Of a DNA stretch of 64,000 nt, positions 49,301 to 52,300 are shown piece by piece; the stretch's first letter is position 1; each line of letters opens with the position of its first letter. The notes below the pieces were generated by a model, which saw only the letters and a program-made list of their open reading frames with translations, did not search any database and had not been told where the DNA came from. Origin of the DNA: Octopus sinensis (taxonomy: Eukaryota); the NCBI RefSeq assembly GCF_006345805.1, contig NW_021835963.1, positions 1-64,000 on the forward strand. Direction: 5' to 3'. A program made the position numbers and the translations under genes.

Positions 49301-52300
49301 ATCTTCCAGGAGGAACAGAAAGCTTCTTAAATAATTAAGAATCACGTCTCATGATACAGATGCTTCGAGAGGCTTAGAAAAGGGAGGTTACTCTATGATC
49401 TTTCTTGCAAGGGAGATCATTCAACTGTCTAACTACTTACAGCACTACAGAACTAACATGTAATAACAAATAGAAGTAATAACTTGTTATAAAATTTTTA
49501 GTTTTAGTAAAAGCTTTTATTTTCTAAATCTAAATACTTTATTTGAAATTTTATCCTTACCAGCAATATTTTAAGTAAAAACTTTTGTTCGTTCTGCACT
49601 TCGCCAGATGTAATAAGCTGTCCTGAACTTTTCCAAATGTAGTAACTTGTCCTGTAATTTTCCAGGTTTATGTTAAGAATATTATTTCTCTTGCTCGCAT
49701 TTTTTCAAGTAATATACAAATGTGTGTGTGTGGTGTGTGTGTGTGTGTGTGTGTGTGTGTGTGTGTGTGTGTGTGTGTGTGTGTTTGTGTGTGAGTATAT
49801 ATATATATATAAAACAAAGTAAAGTTGTAAGGAACCGCACGCACGAGTGAAAATATATATGAAAGAAGGTCTGAAAATGCAAAGGTCTTCTAGATATGTT
49901 CATTGACTCGACCAGTTTCACTATTTTAGAAAAAGATTATCAAAAGTAAAATGTAAAGCTTTGTGTAAGCTTTGTTGCGTTAGAAAATGGTTAGCTCAAA
50001 AGTATTAAAATACAGTTATACAGTCTTTGATCATGATTAGAACATGTCAAAAACAGTTTACATGAAAGTATTCAATAAGTATTTTGAGTTCAATAAAAAT
50101 CATGTTTGTTTGGTAGTATATGTATATACAGAAGGAGATATATTTAAGAATTTTCAAAACATTGGAGAGGAATAACTGACCTGTCTGTCTAACGTTTTCT
50201 GTTTTGTGTGTAACTAAGGTATGTTTACTTGTTTAAGGAATAGTGTGGGAGGTTGGTTGGGTGAGGAAGAGCAATGTGGAATTAAACCTTACTCTTTTAC
50301 TCTTTTACTTGTTTCAGTTATTTGACTGCGGCCATACTGGAGCACCGCCTTTAATCGAGCAACTCGACCTAAGGACTTATTCTTTGTAAGCCCAGTACTT
50401 ATTCTATCGGTCTCTTTTGCCGAACCGCTAAGTGACGGGGACGTAAACACACCAGCATCGGTTGTCAAGCAATGCTGGCGGGGACAAACACAGACACACA
50501 AACACTCACACACATACACACATATATATATATACACATATACGACAGGCTTCTTTCAGTTTCCGTCTACCAAATCCACTCACAAGGCATTGGTCGGCCC
50601 GGGTCTATAGCAGAAGACACTTGCCCAAGATGCCACGCACTGGGACTGAACCCGGAACCATGTGGTTGGTTAGCAAGCTACTTACCACACAGCCACTCCC
50701 GCGCCTTCTTTCATATATATATAGAGAGAGAGATTTTATTTCTTAATGAGATAAAAAACCAAGGCTGTGTAGATTTTAGAACATTTAGAGATAGATGGTC
50801 TTACAGCTGTTTCCAGGATATTTATTATATCCCTTCATCAGAGACGGTGTGAGAGGATGGTTAAGAAATAATTAATTCAGATAAGATATAAAATAGAGAC
50901 GAGGTGGAGGAAATAAAAGAAAAAGATGTGATATATGTAGGGATATTGCATTTGTAGATCCGTTTTTTAAGGCAGAATGGTATACATATAATGTTCCAAT
51001 ACCTTATGAGTAAAATCCAATAGAATTTAAAATTTATTTATCGAAATGTGACAGGGTGATGCCATAGTAGGATGGTGAGATGGGTAAGTTAAAGTTGAGC
51101 TAGGAGGAAAGAATGAACAGGTAGAAGAAGGGGATGATACTTGAGGGAGAGGTGTAACGGTTTATCGATGGAGGAGTCACCAAAGGTTAAGGGTGAAAAG
51201 ATGGTAGAATTAGAACAATGAAAAGAAAACCGTGGAGAATTGACAAAATGAAAAATTGAAAAATTGGATAGATAGATAGAAAGATAGATAGATAGATAGA
51301 TAGAAAGAAAGATAGATAGATAGATAGATAGATAGATAGATAGATAGATAGATAGATAGATAGATAGATAGATAGATAGATAGATAGATAGATGGATAGA
51401 TAGATAGATAGATAGATAGATAGATAGATAGATAGATAGATAGATAGATAGATAGATAGATAGATAGATAGATAGACAGACAGATAGATAGATAGATAGA
51501 TAGATAGATAGATAGATAGATAGATAGATAGATAGATAGATAGATAGATAGATAGATAGATAGATAGATAGATAGATATAGATAGAAAGAAAGATAGATG
51601 AATAGATAGATAGAAAGAAAGAAAGATAGATAGACAGATAGATAGATAGATAGATAGATAGATAGATAGATAGATAGATAGATAGATAGATAGATAGATA
51701 GATAGACAGACGGATAGACCGTCAGGCACACAGATAGACAGACAGACAGAAGACAGACAGACAGACAGACAGACAGACAGACAGACAGACAGACAGACAG
51801 ACAGACAGACAGATAGATAGATAGATAGATAGATAGATAGATAGATAGATAGATAGAAGATAGATAGATAGATAGATAATAGATAGTAGATAGATAGAGT
51901 AGATATATAGATAGATAGATAGATAGATAGATAGATAGATAGATAGATAGATAGATAGATAGATAGATAGATAGATAGATAGGTTTCTTTATTAGCCACA
52001 CAGGGCCGAACACAGAGGGGGCAACATACAATGTAAAGCTTTTCTTTTCGAAAATAGAAAGAAGGGAGAAAAACAAAATTCCGATGAAAAGGGATCGTGA
52101 GAAAAAGAGAAAAAAACGATCTAAAGGGATCACGTATCACAGAAAAACTTTTTAAGTGTAAAAAGCAAGATAATTTTATCCGTGGAAGACAGACAGACAC
52201 ATAGGCAGAGGGGACCTACAGTTGGTGTGTGATCTGTGTCTGTACCCTTGTTGCTAGTTCTATGGTTAGTGGGCCAAAAGAACGCTTTCGGATCTATTAT

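Follow-up and report, generated by a model that had tools for sequence, protein, structure and literature searches.

A minimal hammerhead motif in intron 1 of an Octopus sinensis SLC22A8-like gene as the probable ribozyme module of a decaying Penelope-type repeat

Introduction

Minimal hammerhead ribozymes (HHRs) are carried in the terminal repeats of Penelope-like elements (PLEs) and occur, far more often, as solo motifs in metazoan genomes (Cervera & de la Pena 2014, PMC4209133). Within a genome, these minimal motifs form consensus families that consist mostly of solo copies, with some inverted pairs; the single such motif of Schistosoma mansoni assayed in vitro showed no detectable cleavage as a monomer and low activity in dimer and trimer constructs (PMC4209133). 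Here we analyze a minimal type-I hammerhead motif in a stretch of 64,000 nucleotides (nt) of the Octopus sinensis genome (positions 1 to 64,000 of contig NW_021835963.1, assembly GCF_006345805.1; hereinafter, the window). The motif occupies positions 50798..50845 of the minus strand and lies in the first intron of a SLC22A8-like gene. It is likely to be the ribozyme module of a solo, non-autonomous element of about 300 base pairs (bp), of the PLE or non-long terminal repeat (non-LTR) retrozyme type, present as a decaying copy that probably has no role in the host.

PLE hammerheads are located near the 3' ends of the elements, and (TA)n is among the preferred PLE targets (Craig et al. 2021, PMC8557442). 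The non-LTR retrozymes of animals, whose units measure ~170-400 nt, are considered to be non-autonomous derivatives of PLEs (PMC7229834; bioRxiv 10.64898/2026.07.22.740005) and have been traced to the pseudo-long terminal repeats (pLTRs) of PLEs (bioRxiv 10.64898/2026.07.22.740005). According to the same preprint, retrozyme monomer copies are evenly dispersed in Xenopus, and ~44% of all retrozyme copies overlap introns. In a vertebrate PLE, hammerhead mutants had no effect on insertion in vitro, and no RNA sequencing (RNA-seq) reads end at the cut site (PMC11167929); cleavage appears to be minor even in active elements.

Results

Read on the minus strand from 50845 to 50798, the 48-nt motif consists of the 5' strand of helix I (GUCU, 50845-50842), the core CUGAUGA (50841-50835), an extra A (50834), the two strands of helix II (GGGAUAU, 50833-50827, and AUAUCCU, 50821-50815) joined by an AAUAA loop, an extra G (50814), GAAAC (50813-50809), the loop AGCU (50808-50805), GUA (50804-50802), and the 3' strand of helix I (AGAC, 50801-50798). 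The core and helices were read directly from the sequence, and the set of invariant hammerhead nucleotides is complete, with C3-A9 at 50841-50835, G12-A14 at 50813-50811, A15.1 and U16.1 at 50810 and 50803, and A17 at 50802. Helix I comprises 4 bp and is open: the adjoining positions are an unpaired c.c, and there is neither a loop 1 nor any loop1-loop2 contact. Helix II comprises 7 bp, including one G.U pair, and helix III only two, A15.1-U16.1 (50810/50803) and C15.2-G16.2 (50809/50804). The segment from A15.1 to U16.1, ACAGCUGU, is an 8-nt palindrome. Cleavage is predicted 3' of GUA, between 50802 and 50801, which is the scissile bond given in a preliminary description of this DNA; the intact core, 4-bp helix I, 7-bp helix II, palindromic AGCU loop, and GUA triplet listed there are all borne out by the minus-strand reading.

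The motif departs from the canonical hammerhead between the core and helix II, a feature that the preliminary description does not mention. The extra A at 50834 and the extra G at 50814 form a 1x1 A.G mismatch that separates the core from helix II, with the result that the junction between 11.1 and G12 is non-canonical and the core is not directly flanked by the 10.1-11.1 pair. This pair is G.U in the intronic motif versus G-C in the consensus of the repeat family described below.

A strict descriptor (the core, helix I of at least 4 bp, helix II of at least 5 bp, paired 15.2/16.2, and U-H) matched the window once, against a mean of 0.005 matches over 200 dinucleotide-preserving shuffles. Searches of 401 nt and 76 nt with the Rfam hammerhead models (Hammerhead_1, _3, _II, HH9, and HH10) produced no match, either at the gathering score or at E<=10; thus, these models do not cover the minimal form of the hammerhead. 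Another CUGAUGA/GAAAC pair on the minus strand, at ~59198-59290, was rejected: it is located inside a retroelement open reading frame (ORF) and fits no hammerhead topology.

Self-BLAST, alignment, and a search with an nhmmer profile placed the motif within an AT-rich dispersed repeat of ~300 bp that is present in the window in six copies. The carrier of the motif, copy A (50734-51034, minus strand), is 301 bp long, with 29.9% GC, and shares a sharp 5' boundary, AATTTTAAAT, with copy B (63448-63731, minus strand), which is 80% identical to copy A and lies ~6 kb upstream of the start codon of the SLC22A8-like gene. This 20% divergence fits the old expansion of PLE families in Octopus vulgaris, at a Jukes-Cantor (JC) distance of ~0.2 (PMC13282606). 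In copy B, the core is damaged by a U4->C change, and helix II contains a C.C mismatch. Copy D (29420-29562, minus strand), which represents the 3' module, retains an intact core with one mismatch in helix II and a non-palindromic AGUU loop. Copy E (30942-31078, minus strand), the source of the "31012 half-site" (31012-31059) of the preliminary description, has lost the 5' part of the core (GGGAUAA in its place) but keeps GAAAC-AGCU-GUA-AGAC intact, with a would-be cut at 31016|31015. Copy F (30294-30435) is on the opposite, plus strand and carries a G8->A change in the core. Copy C (11213-11277, minus strand) is a tail only, which starts no more than ~10 nt upstream of where cleavage is predicted. 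Thus, as stated previously, copy A is the best preserved of five hammerhead-bearing copies: it alone combines an intact core with intact helices, and the other four (B, D, E, and F) are damaged; the tail copy C is a sixth member.

Several features are common to the family. The cut site lies ~65 nt before the 3' end of the repeat unit, and at the end of every copy is a tract of (TA)n, (TC)n, or (GA)n; in copy A, the 3' end abuts a (TA)n(GA)n microsatellite (50713-50733, no strand assigned). The extra A between A9 and 10.1 is present in all five motifs, and helix II is 7 bp long in copy A compared with 5 bp in the consensus of D, E, and F. Across the five motifs, 91% of the helix cells are paired versus 10-51% when the partners are slid. 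Copy A is non-coding and has no ORF specific to the element: the sole overlapping ORF of at least 120 amino acids (aa) (50472-50852, plus strand) enters from a neighboring short interspersed nuclear element (SINE). The sense copies nearest to A are E and D, ~19.8 kb and ~21.3 kb downstream, respectively, and intron 1 contains no second intact sense copy.

Copies E and F are arranged tail to tail as an inverted pair around (TA)n, with 191-nt arms (30325-30515 and 30863-31053) that are 83% complementary. Copy E lies past the stop codon of the SLC22A8-like gene, at a distance of 91-227 nt, and upstream of the first AATAAA (at 30575), and so may be in the 3' untranslated region (UTR); the inverted repeat as a whole begins ~90 nt past the stop codon and may likewise fall within the 3' UTR.

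Copy C directly adjoins the head of a tRNA-like SINE in antisense orientation (11213-11430), a junction that could reflect either SINE insertion truncating the copy or a copy templated by cleaved RNA. Another tRNA-like SINE (50557-50709, minus sense), with a B-box-like GGTTCCGGGTTCAGTCCC, directly follows the microsatellite of copy A, and related SINE copies are found at ~4616-4863, 35619-35872, 34-319, and 11274-11427. TA, CA, and GA microsatellites, into which the family appears to insert, are very abundant in the window. Long related simple-repeat arrays occupy 51265-51982, 2424-2642, and 63299-63422; the array of ~700 bp near copy A lies ~230 bp upstream of it in the orientation of the element.

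For comparison, loci L002-L009, ~320 kb in total from O. sinensis and O. bimaculoides, were retrieved via SLC22 paralogues and one repeat-derived protein. A descriptor scan of these loci revealed three further hammerhead families that have the identical layout and wholly different helices I and II: GCGG, CUGAAGA, A, GGCC...GGCC, C, GAAA, CAUAUG, UA, CCGC (locus L002, an inverted pair); UUCUG, CUGAUGA, A, UUAU...AUAA, G, GAAA, CAAUUG, UC, CAGAG (also in L002); and CCAC, CUGAUGA, A, UGUC...GACA, G, GAAA, CAAUUG, UA, GUGG (L005, an inverted pair). The respective sites are L002 56914-57245, L002 12244-12311, and L005 38992-39125. The layout common to the families is core-A-helix II-R-GAAA-C-NNNN-G-UH, and the extra A after A9 is present in all three. 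Together with a perfect 6-nt palindrome after GAAA, this layout had five matches in 385 kb compared with none in 60 shuffles; judging by these counts, the architecture, including the A...R pair beside the core, recurs in octopus repeats and is constrained. The covariation between the four families, whose helices I and II remain paired despite their different sequences, would be the strongest indication in these data that the fold was important for the elements. Two of the three additional families are head-to-head inverted pairs beside microsatellites. An exact-pattern scan of metagenome contigs produced no matches.

In RNAfold predictions for the isolated 48-mer, helices I and II form with probabilities of 0.88-0.99 (~0.9 for helix I and ~0.99 for helix II), whereas helix III has p=0.001. 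The hammerhead fold has a free energy of -3.2 kcal/mol versus -10.3 kcal/mol for the minimum free energy (MFE) structure, in which the core CUG (C3-G5) is paired with CAG of the helix III region; when 60-150 nt of flanking sequence are included, the 5' strand of helix I finds other pairing partners. By contrast with the monomer, the MFE structure of the homodimer is a double hammerhead (-25.9 versus 2 x -10.3 kcal/mol), in which helix I is intermolecular, helix II is intramolecular, and helix III extends to 8 bp. We estimate that a gain of 5.3 kcal/mol translates into an affinity of roughly 0.2 mM in trans, so that dimerization would be realistic only in cis, between two copies on one transcript, an arrangement supplied by tandem units or by the pLTR-ORF-pLTR organization of PLEs. 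The preliminary description states that such motifs have little activity as monomers but are active as dimers, in agreement with the published assays (PMC4209133).

The family literature and the predicted folds together suggest a scenario in which two motifs on a multimeric or pLTR-ORF-pLTR element transcript would pair through the palindrome ACAGCUGU. Such pairing would create a long helix III and thereby a double hammerhead that cuts after GUA and processes the RNA of the element. Copy A would have been inserted at a (TA)n-type microsatellite of intron 1, in the orientation of the gene; as a lone intronic copy without a partner, it most likely would not cleave, or would do so in traces only, and would be spliced out with the intron. 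The intactness of copy A probably represents chance survival among decaying copies rather than host selection. As a rough neutral expectation, at ~10% divergence per copy, the probability of remaining intact would be ~0.3 for the 11 invariant positions and ~0.13 for the core together with helix I. Under neutral decay, about one intact motif would be expected among five copies, and one is observed.

The gene that hosts copy A was delineated by tblastn. The concatenated minus-strand exons match 'solute carrier family 22 member 8 [Octopus sinensis]' (P0001) with 99% identity, and the P0001 locus in GCA_006345805.1, contig VCDQ01001855.1, is the window in reverse. Exon 1, which encodes aa 1-43 of P0001, is located at 57327-57199 of the minus strand and is followed by a GT donor; exon 2, at ~47474-47265 (minus), is preceded by a polypyrimidine tract and AG; the last exon is at 31375-31169 (minus). 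Intron 1 accordingly spans ~47475 to ~57198, or ~9.72 kb, with GT..AG borders and GGTAAGT at the donor. Given that both the gene and the motif are on the minus strand, the hammerhead is in the sense orientation inside this intron. The exon placement and the borders thus confirm the sense position within a 9.7-kb SLC22 intron 1 that had been proposed from the letters alone.

We infer the PLE parentage of the family from the architecture of the motif, its position within the repeat, and the insertion target. A comparable arrangement is found in an unrelated PLE remnant of O. sinensis (L005): a remnant of the GIY-YIG endonuclease (1316-1663; VVY..C..YIGETERS..R..EH) is followed, ~420 nt on, by a decayed hammerhead-like motif (UGAUGA-G-GUCACA/UGUGAC-GAAA, ~2089-2119) and, ~115 nt past that motif, by (TA)n at ~2230, a layout as in the copy A family. 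A protein search with this endonuclease remnant produced no candidates.

A number of observations weigh against the PLE or retrozyme assignment. All six copies are solo, with no tandem arrangement detected by self-BLAST or alignments, and the five motifs contain no within-family compensatory pairs. No autonomous PLE with this tail was found among the window ORFs, in the protein searches, or in loci L007 and L008. A Pfam search of 20 window ORFs detected one RVT_1 fragment, distant from every copy, and no GIY-YIG match, and the GIY-YIG-like relics that are discernible in the window are not linked to any copy of the family. The extra purine before G12 is not part of the published description of minimal HHRs and makes the catalytic competence of the family uncertain even as a dimer; the present inactivity of copy A is a prediction. 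Finally, six copies occur within 53 kb around one SLC22 gene, compared with no complete copy in the ~320 kb of comparison loci searched with an nhmmer profile of the 3' module; plain random dispersal does not explain this local clustering. Those loci contain two partial matches: a tail piece at L003 12413-12468, from O. bimaculoides, and a palindromic relic at L005 22457-22533.

The latter relic is a hairpin-like palindromic duplication of the 3' half of a D/E/F-type motif (…GGGATATCCCAGAAAGAGCTGTAAGAC plus its reverse complement) and lies within a longer inverted repeat. The GIY-YIG-like relics of the window are located at 27699-28775 (plus), 11800-12153 (plus), and 24269-24490 (minus), with the motifs Y-KP-N..Y...S-HP and YIG-T..F-R..H. 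The sole relative retrieved in a protein search with the 27699-28775 relic is a decayed 208-aa O. sinensis protein (P0016), and the loci of the latter (L007 and L008, two records of one sequence, 99.7% identical) contain no copy of the family. The RVT_1 fragment (19470-19973, minus; Pfam E 1.7e-07), with ORF pieces at 18938-19498 and 19939-20598, belongs to a relic resembling long interspersed nuclear elements (LINEs) that looks unrelated to the hammerhead family.

Among the explanations that differ from a PLE-derived repeat, that of a fortuitous resemblance, in which an AT-rich intron merely happens to contain CUGAUGA and GAAA with some surrounding pairing, could draw on the lack of Rfam matches and on the modest z-score of the 48-mer MFE (-2.19). 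It is refuted by the shuffle result, with one match where 0.005 are expected, and by the family, in which five related copies keep the motif with the high fraction of paired helix cells noted above; the recurrence of the architecture in other octopus families speaks against it as well, and its probability is next to nil. Another, generally unlikely, explanation is that the repeat is mobile but independent of PLEs, that is, a SINE-like or satellite-like repeat comparable to the schistosome Sm-alpha or the newt satellite and mobilized by a LINE or another partner. Under such a scenario, the hammerhead would serve as the element's own processing device or be a parasite of the element. The lack of a PLE ORF linked to any copy would be accounted for in this way, as would the common discrete 5' end of A and B, typical of non-autonomous elements, the junction of the copy C tail with a tRNA-like SINE, and the LINE-type reverse transcriptase (RT) fragments in the window. 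However, PLEs are typified by a hammerhead of this architecture in a 3'-proximal position, by (TA)n ends, and by inverted pairs, and animal retrozymes themselves have been traced to PLE pLTRs (bioRxiv 10.64898/2026.07.22.740005); moreover, the HHRs of the Sm-alpha type are canonical, with tertiary contacts (PMC6155905), unlike the octopus motif.

The preliminary description had suggested, in addition, that the sense motif might cut the nascent SLC22 pre-mRNA in intron 1, a cut that would be tolerated or would influence splicing or output. The intact core and helices I and II, which are confidently predicted in the isolated 48-mer, together with the sense intronic location, would suit a role of the latter kind, and type-I HHRs proposed to take part in mRNA biogenesis are known from introns of RECK, CTCL, and DTNB (PMC6155905). 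Nevertheless, we consider a host-relevant ribozyme highly improbable. The amniote intronic HHRs are canonical, with loop-loop contacts, and ultraconserved, whereas copy A has an open 4-bp helix I and a 2-bp helix III predicted at p=0.001; a competing fold sequesters C3-G5, and the flank draws off the 5' strand of helix I; the S. mansoni minimal motif did not cleave as a monomer in vitro (PMC4209133); and the motif forms part of a decaying repeat family of which the paralogous loci L002, L004, and L009, the last being 30 kb of the same contig, contain no copy. Neither the predicted folds nor the published monomer assays support cutting of nascent pre-mRNA, and an effect on the host transcript, which also lacks a second intact intronic copy as a partner, is not supported; the earlier account therefore holds for structure, context, family, and dimer behavior but not for host function. 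Its suggestion that the intronic RNA could pair with the 31012 half-site is feasible in silico: cofolding of A and E yields helix I (GUCU/AGAC) and an 8-bp helix III, with a free energy difference (ddG) of -8.9 kcal/mol relative to the monomers. On this basis, one can envisage a split hammerhead, similar to that of Clec2, in which copy A supplies the enzyme half and copy E, possibly in the 3' UTR given its distance from the stop codon and from AATAAA, the substrate half to be cut at 31016|31015 of the same or another transcript; discontinuous HHRs in 3' UTRs are known (PMC6155905). Yet 19.8 kb and nine exons separate the two halves, and intron 1, given the kinetics of co-transcriptional splicing, should be spliced out and degraded before E is transcribed or shortly thereafter. 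Furthermore, the A/E complementarity stems from shared repeat ancestry and need not reflect selection, and the 12-bp contact would, judging by the cofold, provide only about micromolar affinity in trans. A split hammerhead is accordingly a very remote prospect. There is an equally slim, if slightly broader, chance that either the A/E pair or copy A cleaving with the help of a host factor represents a co-opted transposon pair that trims or destabilizes SLC22A8-like transcripts.

Discussion

The octopus, like other invertebrates and lower vertebrates, carries minimal hammerheads that are probably inherited from PLEs, and one intact sense copy happens to reside in an SLC22 intron. A complete core inside a gene is no evidence of a host ribozyme: a Penelope-like or retrozyme origin, not recognized in the preliminary description, makes an intronic motif ordinary, and nothing found here points to in vivo cleavage of host mRNA. 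If the intronic copy or the A/E pair truly cleaved in vivo, this would be a rare case of an invertebrate transposon ribozyme acting on a host mRNA. The present analysis adds a cephalopod example; octopus motifs are absent from the hammerhead ribozyme literature that we searched, and the O. vulgaris repeat annotation (PMC13282606) contains neither 'hammerhead' nor 'ribozyme'. The A.R mismatch between the core and helix II is common to the four octopus families and could conceivably mark an active version of the minimal hammerhead in cephalopods; if this extra-purine junction is compatible with cleavage, the accepted hammerhead descriptor would widen.

Among the described systems that resemble the octopus feature in part, the intronic HHRs of amniotes (HH9 and HH10, in RECK, CTCL, and DTNB; PMC6155905) are also type-I motifs in the sense orientation within introns of protein-coding genes and are thought to derive from retroelements. 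However, they have the canonical form, fold as monomers that make tertiary contacts, are recognized by Rfam models, and show conservation across classes; copy A lacks the first three of these properties. The discontinuous hammerhead in the 3' UTR of Clec2 (Martick et al. 2008; PMC6155905) resembles the A/E pair in that its halves are far apart on one transcript. The Clec2 halves, however, are separated by 150-1500 nt within one UTR and are conserved, whereas A and E are pieces of transposons 19.8 kb apart across nine exons. The double hammerheads of newt satellite 2 and of other type-I motifs (Forster et al. 1988, as cited in PMC4209133) have, like copy A, a short helix III (1-2 bp) and a palindromic loop. 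For motifs of this type, activity would be expected only from paired motifs, and the predicted octopus homodimer has that structure; tandem satellite transcripts supply those motifs with a partner in cis, whereas copy A is alone in its intron.

The resemblance to non-LTR retrozymes (PMC7229834; Li et al. 2026 preprint) extends to the unit of ~170-400 bp, the low GC content (30% here), the type-I HHR, and the absence of coding capacity. Retrozymes, which are regarded as PLE-dependent, also have dispersed solo monomer derivatives, many of them intronic, and copy A likewise is solo and intronic. Retrozymes are defined, however, by tandem arrays of 150-450 bp units and abundant circular RNAs (circRNAs), unlike the six octopus copies, which are all non-tandem, and most invertebrate retrozyme HHRs are canonical, efficient cleavers, whereas the octopus motif is minimal.

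The minimal HHRs of metazoan PLEs (PMC4209133) provide a close match. Like these, the octopus motif has an open helix I of 4-5 bp, a helix II of 7-8 bp, and an extra nucleotide after A9; the palindrome formed by 15.2-16.2 and loop 3 permits a dimeric helix III, and there are no loop1-loop2 contacts. At the level of the element, the location of the motif near the 3' end, the (TA)n ends, the predominance of solo copies, and the presence of an inverted pair are shared as well. The differences are that no PLE ORF or pLTR pair is tied to the octopus family and that this family adds an unpaired purine (G or A) between 11.1 and G12, which does not figure in the published description of the minimal HHRs. 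This extra purine, apparently common to several octopus families, would be the point of modest novelty; otherwise, the octopus feature is a cephalopod member of the already known Penelope-type minimal hammerheads, in a solo copy.

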